Source: Epiperipatus broadwayi | Taxonomy: Eukaryota > Animalia > Onychophora | NCBI GenBank assembly: GCA_028023455.1 | Contig: JAQFVV010000007.1 | Span: forward strand, 3,286,001 to 3,350,000 | DNA: 64,000 nucleotides | Direction: 5' to 3' | In this document: piece after piece, positions 33,224 to 51,800 of the stretch | Numbering within the stretch: the first letter of the stretch is position 1 | How the letters are laid out: each line of letters opens with the position of its first letter | Notes under the pieces: generated by a model | The model's input: the letters and a program-made list of their open reading frames with translations, nothing else | Told to the model about the DNA's origin: nothing | Database searches by the model: none | Position numbers and translations under genes: made by a program

Positions 33224-36200
33224 CTAAAAAAAAAATCCAAAAAAATATTATTCACCCATGTATTTTAAGAAGCCTTTCATTGAAGGGTAAAAAAAAAAAA
33301 AACACCTTAATAATATTTCTCCAAAGAATCAACAAGCTAGTGAGAGTTTCTTATTAGATAAGAATAACTAGATAACTATTCCACCATTGTATGGCTAGCA
33401 GGATTAGCTACAGAAAGACCAACTAAAAAAAAAATTCTAAATTGATTTAGAAATCACTATCTATTTACAAAATTTTTCAAATTACATGATATTTGAATTC
33501 CTTGATTGGCATAAAAAAATACAGTGGATTTACAACATTTGCTATATTTTGTTCCCTCTCATATATTCTGCATATCATGTATAATAACTCATATTTTGTT
33601 GATAAGCTTTGATTACAGTAGAATACATGTTTATTGAACAGCAAGATTACAATATTTTTCAACATTCACATATATATATTGCAATAGTATAAAAACAATT
33701 ATTTGCTATTCAAACCTCATGTTTAAATATACCAAATGTAATAGTATTAAAATGAATGAAACATGTAAAATGTTTATCTAATATACTGGCTGGCTAATAT
33801 AATAATATATAAATAAATAAAATATATAGAAACTCTCAAGATTTAGATTAATATGGAATGTAATAATTAATTATTAATGATCGCAGAAAAAAATAATTTC
33901 ATTTAATAAAAATGAAAATTTATTAATATAAACAATAATAACCAATATATATATAAAATTAAAAAACAAAATATTCCTTGTAAAATAGTTTACACTTGAA
34001 TTGATTACCATTTATCTATTACCTATATTATACATGTATCTAACATGTGTTGTGAACAATACACTAAGAAAACAACAACAACAAAAGATTATTTCAGCAC
34101 AAATATTGCTAAATAAATACATAAAAATATATTTTGCAAAATTTAATTACTATGTTTAATTTGCTTATTATTTTTCTTATTATAATAAGCATAAGCTTAT
34201 TAATTTACATTCATAAAAATATTATAAATGTTTATTAAATATGCACTTCCATTAATATTACTCATATATATATATATATGTAAACCTATTTTCTTTTCAA
34301 ATATAATTGAAGACAACAAATAAATATATTTTTATTTAAACAAACTAAAATTATCATTAAGAAATATAGTTTTTGTTTATTACTTGCTTTAACCTCTTCT
34401 TTTTAGTAATGATATATTTTCTTGTGTATAAAGAATTTATTTTTAAAAAATAATATTAAAAAAAATATTACTTGGTAAATTTTTCTTTTATACTCACAAG
34501 GAATGCCCATCAAATTGTTACTCCATAAAAAAACAATATTCATTGTGTATACCAAAAATTTTCTGATTCACATACATTTTATATAAACACAAAAAATAAT
34601 AATTTATAGTCCAAACTCTTTTAGATAATCTGCTGAAAATCCCATTACATGTTTTGTTGGGTAGATAGATGTTATATTTAATCCTGATTTATTCCAACTT
34701 ATTAACATACCATAAAATTATTCATTTTGACATTTTTTTTATGAAATATTCCCTAATTAACATTTTACAGCATTTAATATTGCTTTATTTATGTAATTGC
34801 AATGACAGTTGTCAATTTCTTCAAAATATCCTGACAAATTACACTGTAGCACTTAATACTGATATTTACCACTATGAAATGATTTATTTTTATCTGATAT
34901 TATTTAGATTCTCAAAAGAGATGACACCTTTCAAGCAGATGTTTTATAAACTTAGCCCATAATATTTATTTCAAACTTTAAATAAAATTGATATATTTAC
35001 ACACAAATTTGGATAGTTTAGCTGCTGAGACAAAAAATATGAGACCGTGTTTAATCTAACATCAGAAGCTTAAATAGTTTTCTCCTGAAAATGTCATATT
35101 TATATCATTATCCTAGAAATTGTTTCTATGGCATCTTATTTTGGCAAATTTATTTTAACGTGTTTCTAAGACTCAAATTTATTTATATATTCACTCAATA
35201 AAAGTTCTTTTCTACAAATCACATTAAAATATATTTTTAAAATTTTAATAACAATAAATATTACAATGTTTTAAAAATGAAAAAATATAATTCTACAAAA
35301 TCAATTTGATGTACAAAATAAATCTAAAATTATATTTACATAAAACAGACATTCTTTCTAATTTATCTATTTTAAGTACTATAATTTAAATACTGATTTT
35401 AAATAAACCAATTGTTTTAAAATAATATATTGAATACCTAAAATTTAATGCTTTTGAATTATCCCAATAATATATAACATATATACATGCACACACATAC
35501 TTTAACAATAATTTAATATCATATTTGTTTATGTTTAAATCTTACTTTTGAAATATATATAGTACGTTAAATGTCAACAAATAAATTTATTAAAATTTAT
35601 TTTATTTTATAATTGCTATCTATTTAAAACTATTTATATACTTTTATTAATATATTCCTAATACAATATATACATTATTAATTTTATTACATCATACTAA
35701 GAATAATAAAAAATATTAATCTTAAAATTATGTCGCATAATACAATAAAAAATATTTTTTTGATACATCACTTGTTTAAAAAAAAAAACATGTATGGCCA
35801 TTTTACATTACAATGTATTATTTAAAACCATTTAATAACAAGATAAACTATTTTAATTATTTTTAAATTAATTTAATAATCTTAGAATTAAAATAAATGA
35901 AATAAACCAACAAAATTTTTTATGTAGATATCACCAAGTGTAAATTCAAGTTACAATGCTACAATATTTAACACAGATGTTTTTTATGTGTATAGTAAGC
36001 ATGCATAAATAAAGTGAAAAACAATAATAAAGTAGATATTAATAATAATTTGAACTTCTTTACATTTATATTTACTGTGTGAGCTCATTCAACAATGTAT
36101 CAGATTTTCATAAACAATTTAACATGCTTGGGATAATGTCTTTTTTCTTCAATAACCTTTTTCCCATTATGGAAATATTAATAGTAGCCTCTTTATGAAC

Positions 36201-37077
36201 AGATAATATTTTTTTTGGATATTTTGATGTTTTTAAGTCTGAAATGGTATAAGAATTTATAGTCACCCTAAATTTCAATTATACATTTAAGGATTCTCAA
36301 TTAAACTTTTCAAACTTTAAACTATCTGATGGAATACAAGAATATTTTACTGTTATTATTTTTTACCGCCATTAAATCAACAATTGTGATTTTATCAGTT
36401 AAGAAAGATATTTTACAAATTTTATTAAATTTCATGAAATTTTTAGCTTTACACTTAGAAAACATTTAATTATGCAATTACTATATTACATCAAAGAAAA
36501 GAGTGAAAGCTATGTGTTTTCATCTTAACCTGAAGAAATATTAAACCATTAAGATCACATGATCACATTTCCTATACTAGTACATTAATTGTTGATAAAC
36601 AGAGCAAAACTCTCCATACAGTATTGCCACCTGTGGAAACAGAGTAATCAATGGATGCCAGAAGGCTTGTGCATAAAATCCCTACCCAATGCCTACTCAT
36701 CCAATATCCCCAGACTAGTTTCTGGCTTGTGGCCTTATTGATTACTCTATTTAGCACAGGTGGCAATACTGTATGGAGAGTTTTGCTCTGTTTATCAACA
36801 ATTAATGTGCTAGTATAGGAAATGTGAAGCTTAATGGTTTAACACGAATCCTGCCTAATAGGATAGTGGTGGTTATGGTTGTAAAAGAGCCAAAGACACC
36901 CAAATGTATGGGTGCTGAACTGAGTTCAGACCCATATGACTATATAAGCTATTGAGCTTAGATTGAAAATATTTTTTGTGTTTTCAATAGTTTTGTAGTT
37001 AAGTAGAGATAAAAGGTGGTTGCTAGAGGGTTGCATTAGATCCTAAGATCTAGATGCAGTGCTCTCAGATCCAAAGC

Positions 37078-37119
37078 TCCTCACTGACGAAGGCCACAAG
37101 CCAGAAACTAGTCTGGGGA
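37078..37119 (+). ncRNA. Type I hammerhead ribozyme (family 1, copy 1)
   Basis: Stem I TCCTCA/TGGGGA; core CTGACGA; stem II GGC-CACAA-GCC flanked by an A and an A; GAAA; palindromic stem III ACTAGT. GUC cleavage predicted after 37113. Confidence 0.85.
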
Positions 37120-37534
37120 TATTGTATGAGTAGGCATTGGATAGGGATTTTATGCACAAGCCTTCTGGCATCCATTGATTACTCTGTTTAGCACAGGTGG
37201 CAATATTGTATGGAGAGTTTTGCTCTGTTTACCAACAATTAATGTGCTAGTATAGGAAATGTGACCATGTGATGCTTAATGGTTTAACACCAATCCTGCC
37301 TAATAGGATAGTGGTGTCTATGGTTGTAAAAGAGCCAAAGACACCCAAATGTATGGGTGCTGAACTGAGTTCAGACCCATATGACTATATAAGCTATTGA
37401 GCTTAGATTGAAAATATTTTTTTGTGTTTTCAATTTCATTCTCATAGTTTTGTAATTAAGTAGAGATAAAAGGTGGTTGCTAGAGGGTTGCATTAGATCC
37501 TAAGATCTAGATGCAGTGCTCTCAGACCCAAAGC

Positions 37535-37576
37535 TCCTCACTGATGAAGGCCGCAAGTCAGAAACTAGTCTGGGGA
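37535..37576 (+). ncRNA. Type I hammerhead ribozyme (family 1, copy 2)
   Basis: TCCTCA-CTGATGA-A GGC CGCAA GTC A-GAAA-CTAGTC-TGGGGA. Cleavage predicted after 37570. Confidence 0.85.
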
Positions 37577-40500
37577 TATTGGATGAGTAGGCATTAGATA
37601 GGGATTTTATGCACAAGCCTTCTGGCATCCATTGATTACTCTGTTTAGCACAGGTGGCAATACTGTATGGAGAGTTTTGCTCTGAAGAAATATTAATGTG
37701 GCCCTCCGAGATGAAAAACTGGCTATTGCCATTTATGAATTTTAATGTTTTCATTTTATGTTTTTATTTTTGTTGTATAAATTGGAGTAGTTTATATTGA
37801 TACTGCATACATCACAATTTCACTGTAAATGCCCAACAATTATCATCTGAACTACAATATTCATGACCATACAATTAGTAGTTACCTATACATACATACT
37901 TATATACAATTATAAAAGATATTATATACAATATTCTACATTATGAATTTTAAAAATAACAAATTTTTCAATGAACCCAATACCTATATCATCATCATCA
38001 TCAGCAACCATTATCAATCCACTGCAGAATGAAGCTCTCTCCAAGTTCAATTCATCTTCTCCGATCTTTAGCTTCTCTTCTCCACATCACCACTGCACAC
38101 TTTCTCATCTCATCCATCCATCTCACATGTGGTCTCTTTCTGGGTCTTTTACAATCTCTTGGAAAACCGTTGAAGACTTCAATTGTCCATCTATTATCAT
38201 CTCTTCTAGCAATATGTCCAGCCCAACTCCACTTCAATCTTTGAATTTTTTTAATGAGATCAGTAATACCTGTTTGTTCTCTTACCCATACATTGCGTTT
38301 TCGATCTCTTCTTGTTACCCCCAACATGCATCTCTCCATATTTCTTTGAGTGGTCTGAAGTCTCTGTATTGCTCTTCTATTAAGTGTCCAAGTCTCAAAT
38401 CCATAAGTAAGAAATGGCAAAACCCACTTGTTAAAAACCTTCCTTTTCAAACACATCGGCATATTTCCTTTTAGTATCAAGTTATTTCTACCAAAAGCAC
38501 TCCAACCAAGTTTAATTCTATGATTAATTTCATCCATTATGTTTCCATCTGTATTAATAATCTGACCAAGGTATTTGTAACCATTAACTTCTTCTAATTC
38601 ATCACAATCAATATTTATTTTCATATTTTGAGCAAATCGACTAAACATTACTTTAGTGTTTATAACATTTATCTTTAGTCCTACTTTCCTACTGTCATCT
38701 GATAACTCCTGAAACATTTCCTGCAACTCTGAAGCATTATCTGCAAAAACAACTACATCATCTGCAAAATCTAAATGAATTAAATAATCTCCATTTACTT
38801 TCACTCCTTTAGTTTCCCATTTTAATCCACAAAATACTTCTTGCAGCACTGCTGTAAAAAGTTTTGGAGATATGGAGTCACCTTGTCTTACACCCATCTC
38901 AATGTTGACTTTCCCAATACCATTATGTAATCTAATTAATGCTGCTGCATTTTTATAAATATTCTTTAAAATATGACAATATCCTGGATCTATACCTTGA
39001 TGATCCAATGCTTTAATCACTGAAGAAATGTTTATAGAATCAAATGCCTTTTCATAATCTACAAATCCAAAACATAATGGCAACTCATATTCATTTGTCC
39101 TTTCTATAACTTCTCTCAATACCTGGATATGATCTACTGTGCTAAAACCACTTTTAAATCCAGCTTGTTCTCTTGGTTGGTGGAAATCCAATGTTCTCTG
39201 TAGACAAGTTGTAATTATCTAGGTAAAAATTTTGTATAAAACTGATAAAAGGCTGATAGGTCTATAATTTCTAATATCGTCTGTATCACCTTTTTTAAAT
39301 ATTAATATTATTACTGCATTCTTCCAATCATCTGGTACATCTTTATCATTTAGACATTTGGTATATAACTTTACTAAAAAAATTTCTATTTCTTCACCTG
39401 TTTCTTTTAATATATCAATTATAATTCCATCATTACCTGGAGCCTTTCCTTTCTTCATACATTTAATTGCATATTTCATTTCTTCATTTAAAAGTCTGGT
39501 CAATTCGGGAGATGTAATAGATATAGGAGATACTTGTTCTTTATTACTATATAATTCTTGATAAAAGTCTTCTACCTATTTCATGATGTCATCTCCTTTT
39601 TTTAGTAATAATTCCCTTATTGCAGATATAAATTTCCTACCAATACCAAAATGTTATTTTACATTCTTGAGACTTTTATTTTCTTCAACAGCTTTCCTCA
39701 CTAGTTCACAGTTATCCTTTCTTATATCATTTTCAATTCTTTTCTGCACCATTTTATAAAATTCAAGATATTCAATTCTTTTTAATGCATCATTTTTGTA
39801 TATCTTCATATTCCTTCTTTCCTTCATAAATTCTCTAGTCTCAGTAGAAATTTTATTGGTCAATTGCTGCTTTTTTTTTATTAGCTATCTTTGTTGCAGT
39901 TTTTAAAAGTGCATCAGTTATTTTTATATTAATTTCATTCAAATCTGAATCATGTTCAAAATCTACTAATACTTGAAACCGATTTGTAAGTTTTAATTTA
40001 AATTCATTAGAATGTTTCTGAAGATTAGGAATATCAACGATAGATATTGTTTTTCTTAATAATTTTTGTCTCTCTAGTTTTGCAATAACACGTATCTTAC
40101 ATCTTACTAATCGATGATCACTTCTTGTGTTAAATTTATAAAGAACATTACAATTTTGAAATATGTATTTTCTGTTAGTCAAAATATAATCCAATTCTGC
40201 TGTACCTTCATTTGGATGCTTCCGTGTCCCATTTCCTTTTAACATTTTTCTTAAAAAAAGAATTCATAATATAAAGTTTTTCTTTTTCTGCAAACTCCAC
40301 AAGTCTATGTCCTCTCTCATTTCTATTACCATAACCAAAATTACTTACAGCACTTTCATCTTTCATTTGTTTATCAATTCTAGCATTAAAGTCTCCGCAA
40401 CAATTTTAAAATGTTGTTTACTCTGATCAAAAGCCTTTTGTACATCCATATAAAAATCTTCTACTACTTCATCACTATGAGAACTTGTTGGGGCATAAAC

Positions 40501-40960
40501 CTGAATTATCTGCATTTGGTATCTGCTATTAAGTTGTATAACTAATCTTGCCACTGTCTGATACACCATCAATCTCCACAATGTTGTTCTTCCACTTTTT
40601 ATTTGTAATGAATCCTACGCCACTTGTATTTCCAATATTTGTGCCTTTATAATAGAGTACATGTCCACTTTTTAAATCAATTGCTTCTTCACCTTTTCTT
40701 CTAACTTCACAAAGTCCAATAATGACCCATTTAATATAAGACAGTTCTTCTTCTAATTCTTGCAATCTTCCTTCACTTGAAAGTGATCTGCAGTTGCAAG
40801 TACCTAAATAAAAAGTTGTCATCAAATGGCAGCCTAGGTCCACAATCAGGGGATTCTTAGCACCCTCTTCCTACGGCCACCAACTGCTGCCTTGGTTGGT
40901 GACTTTACAGCCTCCTGGGAATAAGGGCCATGATTTACTTTTGTCTGTCATAATTGTATA

Positions 40961-41826
40961 CACTTGGGTCTCTTTTTACGTGGACTTATTTAACACGATT
41001 TTGAAGTTACGCGATTCGTGTTTAGTCGATTTCCGATAATGCGCTATTACTTTAAATAATAAATTTCATGCACTTACGTTATATTGAAAGTAATAGCACA
41101 TTATTGGAATTCGACTTTCATCTGAATAATTTCAATATTTTCAGTGCTTTATAATAGTAAGATCTTATACAATAGTGAAATGAAAATCATGATTTCCACA
41201 TTTTATGTATATACATATTAAATTTTACAAGATTATAATGTAAATTTGTTCAAACATTGTGCGTGTTAATTTTGCATTTTAAATCACATTCTGTTTTTGC
41301 TTTTTAAAAAAGAACGCAATCAATTATTATTTTCTTATTAATGATACTAATCATTAATGTGCTCTTAAATTCCAACGAGAGCTAAATGGTTGTATGTCTG
41401 GATATCGCGAGCATCATAAAACAATTAATAAAATCGTCTCAAATATTAATTCCTAATTACGTTGTCACCAGAAAATCATAATAATTAAAACTGTATAAAA
41501 AAATGTAAATTACTGTAGTGTAAATTATGCATAAAAATATATTATTTTGAATAAAATTAAATATTATAGTTAAATAAAGTTTGTCTTGTATCAATTTTTT
41601 TCAAATTTGAAATTTTTTATTAGTCATATTTTATTTCCTTATTTTTTTTTTTTTTGCGCGAATTTTAAACTAATTTTACGTTGGTGCTTTGCTTTTATGC
41701 GAATTTTGAAAAATCACAGACCGCACCCCCCCCCCTTTTCAATGTAAGTTACGTCTATTTTGGCGCGATTTCGTTTGCGCATGTTTTCTGAGGAATCTAT
41801 CTATCGCGTAAAACGAGACCCAGGTG
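40961..41826. mobile_element. Tc1/mariner-superfamily (pogo/Tigger-type) MITE, 866 bp
   Basis: 20-bp TIRs CACTTGGGTCTCTTTTTACG / CGTAAAACGAGACCCAGGTG (2 mismatches) with a TA duplication. The empty site is visible in the paralogous RTE 5' UTR near 50540-50560. Confidence 0.9.
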
Positions 41827-41980
41827 TATATGTATTGGAAAAATATTTATCATTCACACAAACATTCATTCTGCCTTATCAGGCAACAGAGAAGAAGGAC
41901 CATGATGTTTCTTGATCTTAAACTCAGAGATAAAAAGCCAATAAACTCACCACGCTGGCTAATGCGTGTTGGTGAGCAGC

Positions 41981-42146
41981 CCATCAATGTTTGTATACTA
42001 TATAAATAATCACATAGTAATAACAGCTGCAACGACAAAAACGTATGGAGTGGTCATTAGGAATTTGCCCTGCTTGGTTCCTTTAAGGTCTCCAAGAGGA
42101 ATCAAAGGGTCTCCTTTCAGTTAATAGCAAACTTCTTTCTGCAGCC
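41981..42146 (-). ncRNA. HDV-like (CPEB3-type) ribozyme at the RTE 5' end
   Basis: Sense strand: P1 GGCTGCA/TGCAGCT with G1-U wobble; P2 CCACTCCAT/ATTGATGG (one mismatch); P3 ACG/CGT; L3 TTTTTGT; J1.1/4 GT; P4 TACTATGT/ATATAGTA; J4/2 CAAA with putative catalytic C at 41993; long J1/2 of about 90 nt. Confidence 0.75.
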
Positions 42147-42379
42147 AATACCTATAATATATTTTTATATATTTATAATTAATTTTAAATATGTAAGTAT
42201 AGATAAGCACTAATTGTATAGTCAGGAATATTGTAGCTCTGATAATGATTGTTAAGCAAGTTAAAATATTAAAGAAATGACAAAGAAATAAAATTTTATT
42301 TTATTAGATAGAATTGTAAAGTATTTAATGAAGGTGCAAAAAAAAAAATCACAGTGATTCAAATTATAGTACAGAAGAA

Positions 42380-43000
42380 GAATATAATTAATACTCTCGC
42401 ATCTACCAAATAAACCCATCGCAATTTTCACATACAAAAAGCTCTGACTTCAAAGCTACTAATTTTTGAAGTGGATGCTAAAATGTGGAAACACTAATGT
42501 CATCATAGGCATAAAACCTAGATCATTGATGAATAATATTATGTACTATCATCAGACAAATCATCATTTGAACTTTACTCCACTACTAAACTCAAGTCTA
42601 ACAATTGTTAAAAAAAAAAAAAAACACATGTCAACTGTATTGATAGGTAAGAAACATTTTCTGATGCATCTTTCATGATTTATGTGTGGTATTCTATTTA
42701 TTCAATTATTATTCTGCAACACAGGTATAAATAGTGTGAACATTTTAGAAGATGAAGTTTATATTTCATGGAGCAAAGATTATTTCCAGGTAATATTACT
42801 ATTTTCCAAGATAATAATCCTATAATTCATTTAGTTCAGACTATTAAAATGTTTAGAACATGAAACTAGAACTATATATTTCGTACAATCTTCCCAATCG
42901 TCCATTTAACATGTAGAAGGTTGATATTCTCTATTGACAAATCTCAAGATTTTGAAACTTTTCTCCATTAGGCATAAATTATATTCTTTTAGGCAGCATT
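42380..43000 (+). mobile_element. Decayed Tc1-like transposase remnant
   Basis: Fragments in order: VLSSDKSSFELY (cf. VxxSDESKF), GINSVNILED, IFQDNNPIIH (cf. FQQDNAPxH), then a decayed SPDLNPIE-like region. Multiple stops; no TIRs found. Confidence 0.5.
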
Positions 43001-44911
43001 AAAATGTTATACCACACAGAAGTCATATGGTTCTTGATAGCGATTTTATACCACATTAATAAAAAAGATCAGATATTCATTCCCATTATTTTATTCAAAG
43101 ATGATTGTATACTTAAATAGATGCATGATATTGTTACATTACATCATTTTTATCTACATAATGAGTTATAAAAGATATTTCAAAATATTTTAAATTATTC
43201 TCAGATACTTGCAAAAAAAATTCAGAGTGGATATGATATGATACAAAAATGACTTTTCCTTTAGACAAAGTTGTGAGTTTTTTTGTTTTGCATACATATT
43301 AAGTTCTCTATCCTAAGGCAGAATGGTATTTAAAAATCATGTCTAAAAACCTTAGTGGCCAAATTAAACTGTCCCTCTCTTTATTCATATTATATAAACT
43401 AATCAACTTTTTTCCAATTATTATTTCCTTTGATCTAACACAGTAATGTCAGGTCATCCTCTGTTTTAACATATACTACTGCATTTATAAGCTATCAAAT
43501 AAAATTATAAACAAAAATTAAAAACAGTAATTTTTTAAAATTAATCAGAAACATATTAATTTTGTATATATATTACATTTTTTAAATATAAATAGCATTT
43601 TCTTTTTTGAAAAGCTCTTCCCATCTCTTGCATTGTGATAATATATCAGTCATATTTTTTTCATTATAAATAATAAATCATTTTCTTAAAACCATTAATA
43701 TTTAGACATTAATTATCAAAATTTAACAATTACTTAGTAAACATGAAATTATTACATGAAATTATTAAATTTCATAAGCTGTATTTATAATACATAACTT
43801 TAAATTTATTTAAAGATTATATATGTGTTTTTTCTACTGAACTTTTTCAAATATACACTTTTTAATATATGCATACTAAATAATTACACCACTGAAGTTA
43901 CAATCTTTATAATTATTTTCCATAAATCAAATCTTAAGCATATGATGGGGCTTCTTCTCTTCATTTTGTTAACTTCAAAAATTTTAAATTTAATTTGAAA
44001 TTAGTAATTCAACGTGTAAATTTTACCAAGCATAAGAAAATTTGTAAACATCCTGTAAGTCATAAAATGATAATTATTAATTTCAGCACACTAAGTTGTT
44101 TTTTTTTTTCTTGAGAGAGTCTTACACACTAATACTTGCATTTGTAAATATACATAAAATATTAGATTTTTATATTTTTAATTATTTTTATTTATATCTT
44201 AGATTGTTTATATATTGTAGAATTTTAGATTAAACTATATTATAGGTACAAGCATATATATGTTATTAAGTGTCTGTTTTGCATGTTGAAAAAAAAAAAC
44301 ATATGAGCAATTATATGCTAATTTACAGTATTTGCTAGCAGGCTTGGAACAAGATATAGTGAATGTTGTGGCCCCAATAAATTATCTAATCATTATGATT
44401 CATAGTCAACCATTTAATGAACTAATTACATCTGATTTACAAAACTAATATTTAACATTATTTGCAAGATGAAAATTTTAAAAAAATATATTAAAAGATA
44501 ACTGATAAATCTTTTGTAACATTTTTAAGATCAGATATTATAGAGTAATAAATATTCGATAGAATGACAAAAAATGAATAAAATTCCACAAAGACTAGAA
44601 ATAAAAATTATACTGAAAACCTGTATTTTAATAATAATAGCATTTTAAAAATCTGAAATGTAAAAGTAAAAAAAAGAATTAAATAGAACTAAGTGAGCAC
44701 TGCATACACTGACAAATTTTTTAAACATCAGCATTTAAGGAAGAAACATTATAGTGCTTAAGCAAACAAAGCTATGAAAAAATACAAATGCTTAAAATAA
44801 AAAAAGTTTGAAACTAATACATTCTAATAATGAAGTTATAAACAGGAATGAGCATAGCAAAAAAATATTAATAGAAAAGCAGCCAAACGTAAGAAAATAT
44901 AATGTTAGCAG

Positions 44912-44976
44912 TTCTGGCATCCATTGATTACTCTGGCTTGCACTGAGTGGCAATACATATAGAGTTTTGCCTGTTT
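44912..44976 (+). repeat. Short dispersed fragment of retrozyme family 1 (no ribozyme core)
   Basis: TTCTGGCATCCATTGATTACTCTG...GTGGCAATAC...AGAGTTTTGC matches 37163-37230. A similar reverse fragment lies at about 32650-32690. Confidence 0.7.
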
Positions 44977-47214
44977 TAATAGCAGTAAAATTATTAATGT
45001 CATGTTTATAACAACTGAAAATAATGAAATCTGGATCAGTTAAAATATATTAGCTTGGAGAAATCATTTCTGTCACGAAGGTTTATTATTGCATACATCT
45101 AGCAATTTAATATTGTTTTAGAAAAAAAGATATGAAAATAGTAAGAAGAGATTAACTTTTTGAGATTAGGTTGAATATGAGCAATTTTCCAATAATATGG
45201 AGAAAAAAACTAATTTGCAAAATAGTTCAAACTGGTTTTTGAGCACTGGCGAAAATAAAATGCAATTATGAAGACAACAACAGGAATCTTACTTGTTTTG
45301 AAAAATTTCTATCATCAAGATTTATAAGAAAAGAAAAATAAGATAAAAACTATCAAAATTTTATACAGAATTAGAAATATATATATATATTATTTTGACA
45401 AATAGTTGCTCAACACAATCAATAATAAATTTATATTCACTGTGTCAACAAACAGTAAAAACTATATCTCTGCAATGTAAAAGTTTGTGAAACTAAAGTA
45501 TGGAATTTGATTTCAGTTGAATGGTAGATTTAGTAATGAAAAGTCTCATAACTGAATAATTTAACATCAAAGATAATAACAGAATTTTTGAAAAATTTTG
45601 AAACAAGAATTAATCTACTGAAAGGAAGCATTAAAGTTCCCATAAACCGAATGCATAAAATAAATCAATATGGGTCTAAAAATGCTGGAAATAAACACAA
45701 GGCTCATTAGAAAATTAGTTAATAACAATAATAATCTAAACGAACACTATTAAAGATAAAAAAAAATTTCAGAGTTTCTAGTTTAAAAGAAAAATCAAAT
45801 ACATTTAACAGATAGGAGAATGTCATGTAAAGCAGTGCATTAGATCAAATCTCTCCAAAATACAGCCCTCAATGAGAGTTTATGCTACCTGGCTAGAGCT
45901 GAATGAAAAATAAAATAACAATTTGAATTGAATGCTTATCAAATATTTTAATTCTATCACAGATGTTGATATTATTATCTAGTATTTTTATATCATTAAC
46001 ACCTATATATTTTTCAAATAGAAGATGTGTTAAAAAAAACAACCTTGCATTGTTTAGTAAATGAAGCTGAACTATTACAAAGCTCTTGTTAAAATGATAT
46101 ATTATAAATATGTTATTATATCTCGACTGCTGTTTCAATACAAATTTTGATAAACACCGTAACTTTTTTTTATAAATTTTGTGAATGCCTGCTAAATCTA
46201 ATTATGAGTAAGACTCCTTAATAATTTAGGTTTTTTTTTGTTAATGTAGCCCTTGGATTACTTAAGGTTGAGTAACTTTCTGTTAGATCATGGATGAAAA
46301 ATTTTAACCTTTCCTCTATAGTAAAGGTTTAGTTGATCAGATGAGAAAGCTGAGCTACAAACCATATGAAAACACTTTATTGCATAAAGGTTTGACTATG
46401 AATTTTAATCCAACAATTGGATTTGAAGTGAAATTACTTTTCTTTCCATTTGTTTTACAGGTCAACAGAATTCCTCTATTTCTTAATAGCTATATATAAA
46501 AATAAGACAAATTCCTTGATTTTGGCAGAAATTCAGTTTTTTTTATATTGTTTCTAGAAGATACAATTTACTTTCCATCAACTTAGTTTTTTTTTTATTT
46601 TATACCATACCTTCCATATTCTCATCTTTCTCTAAAATAACAAATATAGAATATTAGAAAATTTAAGAACTGTTGAAGCAAAAATCTTTACAATTTCATG
46701 TCAAAAAACAAATAAAATTGTTATTGCTATGTATATAAAAGACAGATTAATAATACACTCCAGATGTATAAAAAATGATTGGTCAAGATTTCAATCAGAA
46801 TAATTAAACTGCTCTAAAAGGAAAAGCACTAATTTTCTGATAAAGTAAAAGTTACAATCACAGTTATGTCTTGCTCAAAGAGCTAATATGTGAATGAATG
46901 AACTTGTTAATAAAATGTGACAGTTATAATATATTTTAGGATATAAAGAATGTAAAGAAGTTAAAAAACACAAAAATAAAACAAAAAAAATTAACTCAAG
47001 TAAACTCAAATGTAGGATAAAGATTAATGTGCTCATTTGTTATTATTCAGGAGTCAGACAGAAACACAACATTTTTTTCTTAGAAATAATATCACCAAGA
47101 ATTGAAAAAAAACCACACACACAAAAGAATATAAATGTGTATACACTAACTATATATATATACATATAATTTTAAAGAGTTTTTTTATTTAGATAAATGA
47201 TATAAAACACTAAC

Positions 47215-47469
47215 CTCTGGTAATTCACACCACAATGTGCGGTGACCACCTTTGCTTTCAGATTTTTGTAGTAATAACAGTGAAGATTTTGGATTGGTTG
47301 CCTCCTGCTTAGAAATATTTCTTGATTGTTCAATCACTGACTGACTCTTCTCCTCAAAAGCTCTACGAATGACATCACAATTATAATACTGATACAATGG
47401 TTCTGATTCCAGCTTCGATTTTTTCTTTTTGTCTTGTCTTAAAGGACTAGCCTGAGGACTAATAAAATT
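47215..47469 (-). CDS. Exn: Ephexin-family RhoGEF coding exon upstream of the DH domain
   Basis: Donor GTTAGT at 47214. Most likely acceptor ttttatttag at 47471-47470, though nearby AGs are possible. NFISPQASPLRQDKKKKSKLESEPLYQYYNCDV...GGHRTLWCELPE carries the family motifs PLYQxY and RTLWCELPEV. Confidence 0.88.
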
Positions 47470-48808: not shown

Positions 48809-51800
48809 TCAACCATTATCAATCCACTGCAGGATGAAAGTCTCTCCAAGTTCAATCCATCTTCTCTGATCTTTAGCTTCTCTTCTCCACATCACCCCTG
48901 CACACTTTCTTATTTCATCCATGCATCTCACATGTGGTCTCTTTCTGGATCTTTTACAATCTCTTGAAATCCAGTTTAAGATTTCAATTGTCCATCTATT
49001 ACCATCTCTTCTAGCAATATGGCCAGCCCAACTCTACTTCAGTCTTTTAATTATTTCAATGAGGTCAGTAACACCTGTTTGTTCTCTTAGCCATATATTG
49101 CGTTTTTGATATCTTCTTATTACTCCCAACATGCATCTCTCCATACTTCTTTGAGTGGTCTGAAGTCTCTGTATTGTCTTCTATTAAGTGCCCAAGTGTC
49201 ACATTCATAAGTAAAAACTGGGAAAACACATTTATTAAAAACCTTTCTTTTCAAACACATAAGCATATTTCCTTTTAATATCAAGTTATTTCTACCAAAA
49301 GCACTCCAACCAAGTTTAATTTCATTCATTGTTTCCATCTGTATTAATAATCTGACCATGGTATTTGTAGCTGTTAACTTCTAACTCATTATAATCAATA
49401 TTTATTTTCATATTTTGAGAAAATCCATTAAACATTACTTTAGTCTTTTTAACATTTATCTTTAGTTCTACATTTCTACTTTCATCTGATAACTCCTGCA
49501 GCATTTCCTGCAGCTCTAAAGCATTATTTGCAAAAACAACTACATCATCCTCAAAATCTAAATGACTTAAATAATCTCCATTTACTTTCACTCCTTTAGT
49601 TTCCTATTTTAATCCACAAAATACTTCTTGCAGCACTGCTGTAAAACGTTTTGGAGATATGGAATCACCTTGTCTTACACCCTTCTCAATGTTGACTTTC
49701 CCAGTATCATTATATAATCTAATTGTTGCTGTTGCATTTTTATAAATAGTCTTTAAAATATGACAATATCCTGGATTTATACCTTGATGATCCAATGCTT
49801 TAATCACTGAAGAAATGTTTATAGAATCAAGTGCCTTTTCATAATCTACAAATCCAGAACATAATGGCAACTCATATTCATTTGTCCTTTCTATAACTTC
49901 TCTCAGTACTTGGATATGATCTACCATACTAAAACCACTTTTAAATCCAGCTTGTTCTCTTAGTTGGTGGAAATCCAATGTTCTCTGTAGACGAGTTGTA
50001 ATTATCTTGGTAAAAATTTTGTATAAAACTGATAAAAGGCTGTTAGATCTGTAATTTCTAATATCTTCTTTATCACCTTTTTTAAATATTAATATTAATA
50101 CTGCATTGTTCCAATCAGCTGGTACATCTTTATCATTTACATATTTGATATATAACTTTGCTAAAAAAATTTCTATTTCTTCGCTTGCTTCTTTTAATAT
50201 ATCAATTATAATTCCACCATTATTACCTGGAGCCTTTCCTTTCTGCAGAAAGGAGTTTGCTATTAACTGAAAGGAGATGCTCTTGGAGGTCTTAAAGGAA
50301 CTGAGCAGGTCAAATTTCTAATGTCCACTCCATACATTCTTGTCGTTGCAGCTGTTATTACTATGTGATTATTCATATAGTATATGAACATGGATGGGCT
50401 GCTCACCAACACGCATTAGCCAGCGTGGTGAGTTTTTGGCTTTTTACCTCTAAGTTTAAGATCAAGAAACACCATGGTCTTTCTTCTCAGCTGCCTGATA
50501 AGGCAGAGTGAATGTATGTGTGAATGATAAATATTTTTCCAATAGATATATACAATCATGACAGACAAAAATAAATCATGGTCCTTATTCCCAGGAGACT
50601 GTAAAGTCACCAACCAAGGCAGTGGTTGATGGCCAAAGGCGAAGGGTGCTAAAAAAACCCTGATTGTGGACCCAGGCTGCCATTCAATGACGACTTTTTA
50701 TTTAAGTACTTACAATTGCAGATCACTTTCAAGTAAAAAAAAATTGCAAGAATTAGAAAAAGAACTGTCTTATATTAAATGGGACTTTATTGACTTTGTG
50801 AAGTTAGAAGAAAAGGTGAAGAGACAATTGATTTAAAAAGTGGACATGTGCTCTACTATAAAGGCACAAATATTGGAAATACAAGTGGAGTAGGATTCAT
50901 TATAAATAAAAAGTGCAAGAACAACCTTGTGGAGATTGATGGTGTATCAGACAGAATGGCAAGATTAGTTATACAACTTAATAGCAGATACCAAATGCAG
51001 ATAATTCAGTTTATGCTCCAACAAGTTCTCATACTGATGAAGTAGTAGATGATTTTTATATGGATGTACAAACAGCTTTTGATCAGAGTAAACAACATTT
51101 TAAAATTGTTGCGGGAGACATTAATGCTAGAATTGATAAACAAATGAAAGTTAAAAGTACTGTAGGTAATTTTGGTATGGTAATAGAAATGAGAGAGGGC
51201 ATAGACTTGTGGAGTTTGCACAAAAAGAAAAACTTTATATTATGAATTCTTTTTTTTTTTTTGAGAAAAATGTTAAAAGGAAATGGACATGGAAGCATCC
51301 AAATGAAGGTACAGTGAAATTGGATTATATTTTGACTAACAGAAAATACATATTTCAAGACTGTAATGTTCTTAGTAAATTTAACACAGGAAGTGATCAT
51401 CCACTACTAAAATGTAAGATACATGTTAATGCAAAACTAGAGAGACAAAAATTATTAAGAAAAACAATATTTACAGTTGATATTCCTAATCTTCAGAAAC
51501 ATTCTAATGAATTTAAATTAGAACTTACAAATCAGTTTCAAGTATTAGTAGATTTTGAACATGATTCAGATTTGAAATGAAATTAATATGAAAATAACTG
51601 ATACACTTTCACAAACTGCAACAAACATAGTTAGTAGAAAAAAGCAGCAATTGACCAATAAAATTTCTACTGAGACTAGAGAATTTATGAAGAAAAGAAG
51701 GAATATGAAGATATACAAAAATAATGCATTAAAAAGGATTGAATATCTCGAGTTTTGTAAAATGGTGCAGAAAAGAGTTGAAAATGATTTAAGAAAGTAT

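Follow-up and report, generated by a model that had tools for sequence, protein, structure and literature searches.

A probable HDV-like ribozyme, mutated in the copy described here, at the 5' end of an abundant RTE retrotransposon family of Epiperipatus broadwayi

The window analyzed here is a 64-kb stretch (64,000 nucleotides) of the genome of the onychophoran Epiperipatus broadwayi, with a base composition of about 27% G+C. Its minus strand carries exons of a host gene and, in the intron from 47214 down to 33224, a non-LTR retrotransposon that is oriented in the sense of that gene. The intron boundaries can be read directly: the donor is ...CCAGAG/gttagt at 47215/47214 and the acceptor ttttag/GTTCGA at 33224/33223 (both on the minus strand), and the reading frame continues in frame across the splice junction (LWCELPE / VRQSGILDIIKPQDRKLQE). 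Three further minus-strand exons (21809-21627, 19448-19272 and 1692-1459), searched singly and not as a joined model, match consecutive positions of the Pfam RhoGEF profile (2-52, 52-105 and 106-175, respectively). The sense location in this intron, as proposed in the first-pass annotation of the window, is hereby borne out by the splice sites, and the three exons identify the host as a RhoGEF; judged by these matches, the element sits in sense within an intron of a Dbl-family RhoGEF gene. The name "ephexin", which had been given to the host gene, presumably fits the motif. The next host intron (between exons 33223-33167 and 21809-21627) contains a decayed fragment of an LTR retrotransposon at about 28863-26023 (-), in which open frames with retroviral-type pol motifs are found, namely reverse transcriptase and RNase H-like ones (FAVKKFHQ, YGWPFKIFTDHKPL).

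The non-LTR element extends on the minus strand from 42146 down to 37989 and measures 4,158 bp, against approximately 3.3 kb for other copies of the same family; the difference is due to an 872-bp insertion in its 5' UTR (see Table 1 for all coordinates). The bounds of this insertion follow from the consensus 5' UTR, which aligns to 42146-41824 only, and from the ORF, which begins at 40951. The insertion is AT-rich, its ends read GGGTCTCGTTTTACG ... CGTAAAAAGAGACCC, and it resembles a small DNA transposon of the non-autonomous kind. Pieces related to it are also present in the flank of another family copy (L035). The coding part of the window copy is decayed: it still matches RVT_1 (E 1.5e-22), and a tblastn alignment to the intact 985-aa copy spans several frames. 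Along its length the window copy is about 91-96% identical to an intact copy. The element had been described as a full-length RTE, which holds in so far as both ends are present, though it is not a canonical copy given the insertion at 41823-40952 and the broken ORF.

Table 1. Features of the retrotransposon copy, its predicted ribozyme and the surrounding host intron (window coordinates; numbers in brackets are positions counted from G1)
Feature	Coordinates	Strand	Basis or remark
Host intron, RTE in sense	33224..47214	-	Splice sites read directly
TSD, 5' copy, TATAGGTATT	42147..42156	-	Exact 10-mer, repeated at 37988-37979
P1, 5' strand, GGCTGCA (1-7)	42140..42146	-	Pairs with 42031-42025, -10.1 kcal/mol
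J1/2 (8-91): 3-nt linker, closed domain 11-88, 3-nt linker	42056..42139	-	Fold
P2, 5' strand (92-102, C97 bulged)	42045..42055	-	Nested MFE fold of a near-consensus copy, 10-bp helix
P3, 5' strand, ACG (103-105)	42042..42044	-	Pairs with CGT at 42034-42032
L3 (106-112), TTTTTGT here, TTCTTGT in the family	42035..42041	-	Position 108 (42039) is the P1.1 partner
P3, 3' strand, CGT (113-115)	42032..42034	-	Sequence, descriptor
P1, 3' strand, TGCAGCT (116-122)	42025..42031	-	T42025 wobbles with G1
J1/4, GT (123-124)	42023..42024	-	G123 is the partner of C108 in the one-pair P1.1
P4 hairpin (125-153), 8 bp, one bulged T	41994..42022	-	MFE folds
J4/2 (154-158), CAAAC here, CGAAC in the family	41989..41993	-	C154 (41993) is the putative catalytic cytosine
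P2, 3' strand (159-168)	41979..41988	-	Consensus duplex -11.0 kcal/mol
5' UTR hairpin CTCACC...GGTGAG, just after the ribozyme	41946..41976	-	Conserved
Insertion of 872 bp in the 5' UTR, bounded by terminal inverted repeats	40952..41823	-	Private to the window copy
Decayed endonuclease/reverse-transcriptase ORF	38007..40951	-	tblastn and RVT_1
(TGA)5 3' tail of the RTE	37989..38003	-	Same tail type in other copies
TSD, 3' copy, TATAGGTATT	37979..37988	-	Exact 10-bp match to the 5' copy

Other copies of the family are far better preserved. An intact ORF of 985 amino acids with Exo_endo_phos and RVT_1 domains was found in two of ten sampled copies, and the nine sampled copies other than the intact reference are 96.5-99.8% identical to it. 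Intact copies have a single ORF encoding endonuclease and reverse transcriptase, a (TGA)n tail and TSDs of 9-20 bp; by these features, rather than by a formal clade phylogeny, the family can be assigned to the RTE clade. Its closest named proteins are insect RTE-type endonuclease-reverse transcriptases, with identities to the family ORF of 51-54% for psyllid and 41-45% for Lepidoptera proteins. Assembly contigs reach 60% (P0001-P0003), and the RTEs P0001-P0005, among them a Diaphorina citri locus, span 53-60%. A division into two subfamilies with different endonucleases, suggested by low tblastn identities, was ruled out: the full-length copies are 96.5-99.8% identical throughout, and the low values result from frameshifts.

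The 5' ends of the family are exact or nearly so. Of 60 other copies, about 51 have this GG as their first bases, with unrelated DNA upstream, and the remaining ones miss just 1-4 bases. In eight of ten other full-length copies a TSD of 9-20 bp lies flush with G1 and with the 3' tail, and in one further copy the TSD is ambiguous since it falls in an AT repeat. Counted over the entire genome (5.6 Gb), the 32-base ribozyme core occurs 5,472 times with a C at position 108, the residue that differs in the L3 of the window copy, and 74 times with a T. This ratio fits what random decay would give. T108 had appeared as a subfamily marker in a first, query-biased sample, and was rejected as such on the genome-wide counts.

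Positions in the ribozyme are numbered from G1 (42146), so that a position p corresponds to window coordinate 42147 - p. Read directly from the minus strand, the segment 42146-41979 contains all elements of the nested double pseudoknot of HDV ribozymes in the correct order, as the first-pass annotation had noticed. The same annotation had put G1, the predicted first base of the cleavage product, at the exact 5' boundary of the element, where it is indeed set by the 10-bp TSD together with the common start of the other copies; the 3' end given at the time (41981) is too short, as P2 runs two bases further to 41979 (position 168). The J4/2 cytosine is kept at 41993, exactly where it had been placed.

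To describe the family rather than one decayed copy, we used a majority consensus that covers the first 340 bases of the 5' UTR only. The consensus has a P1 of 7 bp (opening with a G1.U wobble), a P2 of 10 bp with one bulge and a P3 of 3 bp; L3 is UUCUUGU, C108-G123 provides the pairing between L3 and the bases after P1 (P1.1), and the P4 hairpin is followed by C-GAAC as J4/2. P1, P3 and P2 pairing and the J4/2 cytosine are thus all kept at the family level. The same holds for the one-pair P1.1, the GU linker and the long J1/2 that had been pointed out earlier (consensus and folds), and the consensus L3 proposed at that time, TTCTTGT, agrees with the genome-wide core counts.

Folding of a near-consensus copy provides further support for this arrangement. 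For the J1/2 domain (positions 11-88, 78 nt) the fold energy is -27.4 kcal/mol (z -2.5; three of 200 shuffled sequences do as well). Over positions 1-168 it is -50.6 kcal/mol (z -3.1; none of 200 does as well), in a structure that holds both the 10-bp P2 and P4. The nested fold chooses P2 over P1, as expected of a pseudoknot. Shorter registers of P2 (4 bp and 5 bp) were considered and are superseded by the 10-bp helix with bulged C97 seen in the MFE fold.

The fit to the HDV architecture was compared with chance by means of a strict descriptor. It demands a 7-bp P1 that opens with G.U and is followed by a G, a 3-bp Watson-Crick P3 that abuts the P1 3' strand and is closed by an L3 of 6-9 nt, a P4 of at least 5 bp with C-N-A-A behind it, and a P2 of at least 5 bp abutting P3; these are canonical features, written down after the sequence had been seen. 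Anchored at base 1, the descriptor is matched by the majority consensus built from the first 30 copies. The first 200 bases were also shuffled 20,000 times with their dinucleotides preserved: 20 of the shuffled sequences pass P1, P3 and the G, 10 pass these plus J4/2, two also pass P4, and none passes all features. Without the anchor the descriptor is less specific: it finds about two AT-only chance matches on both strands of the window (128 kb) and two matches in 605 kb of metagenome loci. Because of this low specificity in AT-rich DNA, the weight lies on the independently set first base and on the G+C-rich helices. When the flanks and bodies of 58 other copies with full-length 5' ends were searched (371 kb, both strands), 20 of the 21 strict matches were located at RTE 5' ends, and 20 of the 58 copies fit the strict descriptor.

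HDV-type ribozymes have been known in RTEs since 2009-2011. According to PMC3774820 and PMC6765202, Webb et al. (2009) and Ruminski et al. (2011) described them at the 5' ends of RTEs and of further non-LTR elements, and they cut at the 5' junction of RTE, R4 and L1 elements (PMC3774820). The general statement that RTE-clade elements use HDV-like ribozymes for 5' processing, from which the annotation had started, is supported by both sources (PMC3774820, PMC6765202). By its sequence features the present family would be filed with the HDV-like 5'-processing ribozymes of RTE, R2, R4 and L1Tc. It resembles the RTE ribozymes in that the ribozyme comes first in the element with the cut site (a predicted one in this family) at the element's first base, in the order of the nested double pseudoknot, and in a dependence on read-through transcription, often from introns. 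RTEs with HDV-like ribozymes have no promoter and are transcribed from introns (PMC6765202), so residence in sense within an intron is the expected lifestyle. Differences are that its sequence is unrelated to known RTE ribozymes as far as Rfam models tell, that P1.1 is a single pair here, and that the family is unusually large, with at least 5,472 perfect cores.

As for the periphery, large HDV-like ribozymes are activated when J1/2 is structured, the linkers are short and P2 is extended (PMC4908430). [quoted passage not shown] R2 ribozymes of silkmoths are active with J1/2 loops of 216-498 nt (PMC3774820), and the long J1/2 observed here is therefore no objection. R2 ribozymes are also alike in that they process the 5' end out of a co-transcript and tolerate a long J1/2. 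They differ in that R2 inserts site-specifically in 28S rDNA and is released from transcripts made by Pol I, the cut often lying upstream of the junction, whereas the present RTE inserts genome-wide and is predicted to be cut at its own first base.

The core design resembles that of the CPEB3 ribozyme: both have an L3 of 7 nt that reads UUCNNGU, a P1.1 of one pair, GU as the linker after P1, and a J4/2 in which CGAA is joined by a single pyrimidine. Both are also located in introns in sense, the CPEB3 ribozyme being intronic as well (PMC6765202). Here, by contrast, the host is a RhoGEF and not CPEB3, the organism is not a mammal, and the ribozyme belongs to a mobile element with thousands of copies; moreover, J1/2 has 84 nt against a few bases in CPEB3, and there is no match to the Rfam CPEB3 model. 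The label "CPEB3-like" used in the first-pass annotation is consequently fair as a description of the core design, but it does not stand for a relationship, as the Rfam HDV and CPEB3 models are silent at E <= 10.

Overall, it is very probable that the segment 42146-41979 (-) is a mutated HDV-like self-cleaving ribozyme, and that it constitutes the first 168 nt of a young and abundant RTE family. The fold of the consensus, its fit beyond chance, the precise starts of the copies, their number, and the position and orientation in the host intron can be read from the sequence; that family transcripts would cleave themselves, and that this cleavage would serve 5' processing, is what we infer. An element of this kind would not need a precise promoter of its own: any read-through transcript, for example of a host intron, would fold into the nested double pseudoknot, and C154 of J4/2 with a bound Mg2+ would cut the backbone just 5' of G1. 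The released RNA would start at the first base of the element and would then be reverse-transcribed at a new site. A cut at G1 would account for the common G at which full-length copies begin, and for its position directly next to the TSD. The structured J1/2, the 3-nt linkers and the 10-bp P2 would match the 'pinch' design that speeds large HDV-like ribozymes.

The window copy itself deviates from the consensus by eight substitutions in positions 1-168, four of which are in the core: U93A in outer P2, C108U, which turns P1.1 into a wobble U.G with G123, G155A in J4/2 and G161U in inner P2, beside the active site. The others are G13A, a mismatch in the closing helix of the J1/2 domain, G58A and G72A in J1/2, and C143T in the P4 loop region. 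A P2 mismatch and the L3 C-to-T change had already been named as possible causes of silencing, and comparison with the consensus confirms both changes. P1, P3, P4 and the J4/2 cytosine are intact, and what has been lost is the Watson-Crick pair of P1.1 and two pairs of P2. The copy fails the strict descriptor at P2 only, where U93A and G161U lower the predicted duplex from -11.0 kcal/mol (consensus) to -4.0 kcal/mol.

It might be argued that this copy is nonetheless active and cuts the nascent pre-mRNA of the RhoGEF (ephexin-like) gene, thereby lowering or modulating host expression. Next to the intact elements and the confirmed sense orientation in the intron, this would be helped by the fact that eight of the ten P2 pairs can still be drawn, that C108U leaves a G.U wobble at P1.1, and that C108U and G155A each occur in other copies that do fit the strict descriptor. 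Against it, all four core changes are combined in this one copy, P2 is broken in its inner half, beside the active site, G13A puts a mismatch into the helix that closes the J1/2 domain, and thousands of better copies exist genome-wide, with nothing that singles out this one. The four core changes and the weakened P2 make impairment the more likely outcome, and we regard an active window copy as unlikely. Judged from the sequence, the window-copy ribozyme most likely cleaves slowly or not at all, and the RhoGEF pre-mRNA of the host is probably affected little by it.

A more fundamental alternative is that the segment is not a ribozyme. The fixed start would then come from an internal promoter, the helices would be 5' UTR structure with another role (in translation, or in binding of the element's protein), and the HDV likeness would be fortuitous. 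Such a reading could draw on the Rfam results. At gathering score no family of any kind, hammerhead included, was matched in the whole window; at E <= 10 no HDV, CPEB3, drz, twister or other ribozyme model matched 41800-42300; and neither the intact copy L035 (E <= 1) nor four related contigs (permissive search) gave a match to a ribozyme family. The 84-nt J1/2, which such models would penalize heavily, is a likely cause of this. There is likewise no covariation to support the helices: in 60 copies a minor variant is frequent at 14 positions, of which 10 reflect CpG decay and none of the remaining is compensatory, and the copies are too alike. The signal is missing because the family is too young and because the reachable relatives do not have the motif.

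These relatives comprise 80 metagenome loci and 20 GTDB loci, every one of the latter on a contaminant contig of a MAG. Their 5' regions gave nothing convincing with strict, relaxed, P1+P3-only or P1-less descriptors, and an HDV core was not found in the 5' regions of RTE relatives with 46-56% protein identity on metagenome and MAG contigs. Three of the contigs (L043, L044 and L050), which stem from human-gut metagenomes, have RTE-type ORFs 46-47% identical to the family ORF. Since intact RTEs are, to our knowledge, absent from the human genome, these three contigs were not regarded as human; they have no bearing on the conclusions. A clean match to the strict descriptor does occur in another metagenome contig, at L112:5266-5600 (+), downstream of a distant RT match (P3 ACC/GGT, L3 TCCGCGT, GG after P1 and J4/2 CTAAGA); this contig starts in 28S rRNA, and the element is unrelated and rDNA-associated. 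Some other elements of the RTE superfamily are reported to have twister-variant ribozymes at their 5' ends (PMC8501958; PMC7761336). These are alike in position, presumed role and superfamily, and unlike in ribozyme class. By analogy, the use of twister elsewhere may explain that the reachable RTE relatives are without an HDV core, and ribozyme modules may differ between RTE lineages.

What related RTEs do have in common with the family is the hairpin just downstream of the ribozyme (41946-41976 (-)). It has 27 of 32 bases in common with the 5' UTR of an RTE with 46% protein identity on a metagenome contig (L041:304-335), where the counterpart lies about 20 nt before the start codon, and shows a weaker similarity to L046:345-373. 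This suggests that the hairpin is conserved in its own right, as a part of the 5' UTR distinct from the ribozyme. In addition, positions 166-171 (GGCTGC; 41976-41981 (-)) duplicate the P1 5' strand (42141-42146 (-)) and could pair with the P1 3' strand. The resulting competing helix (116-121/166-171) would enclose P4 and J4/2, and may represent a different fold of the RNA or one taken up after cleavage. In L041 a similar-looking helix, GGCGCAG...CTGCGCC, is found on either side of the corresponding region. Both the shared hairpin without an HDV core and the look-alike of the competing helix could be cited for a structure with some other role. Such a role would have to be reconciled with the anchored descriptor, which chance did not reproduce in any of the 20,000 shuffles, with the correct spacing of G1.U, the 3-bp P3, the 7-nt L3 with its C, the G after P1 and the C-GAA after P4, with a periphery designed like that of large HDV-like ribozymes which have been tested (PMC4908430), and with the documented RTE ribozymes of HDV class (PMC6765202, PMC3774820). 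We therefore consider a non-ribozyme structure very unlikely and retain the self-cleaving ribozyme as the preferred reading.

In all, the 64-kb window contains six copies or fragments of the family. A second family 5' end is found at 50243-50571 (+), antisense to the host gene and with its first two bases missing; it has an 11-nt deletion in J1/2, the change G105A in P3 and a C-to-T change of the J4/2 cytosine, and it abuts a 5'-truncated minus-strand copy at 50248-48812. That copy is one of four 5'-truncated fragments, all on the minus strand, the others being 31983-29366, 32580-32244 and 54292-53688.

For the window locus the message is modest, given that the copy is decayed and that an effect on the host would probably be small. 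On the scale of the genome, with at least 5,472 perfect cores and with intact ORFs still present, one could suppose that the family provides cleavage sites genome-wide, at which sense-oriented introns are cut co-transcriptionally, with decayed copies such as the one in the RhoGEF gene acting as weak attenuators of their hosts. We think this highly improbable; if true, the CPEB3 situation would be repeated thousands of times, which would offer a possible domestication route for intronic ribozymes.

Summarizing, the family adds a well-defined retrotransposon of very high copy number, with predicted HDV-type setting of its 5' end, in a large and AT-rich animal genome, and it is an example in which a large structured J1/2 domain is combined with a one-pair P1.1. 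The ribozyme provides annotators with a precise marker for full-length copies of the family, and it points to thousands of places within host introns at which transcripts might cleave themselves.
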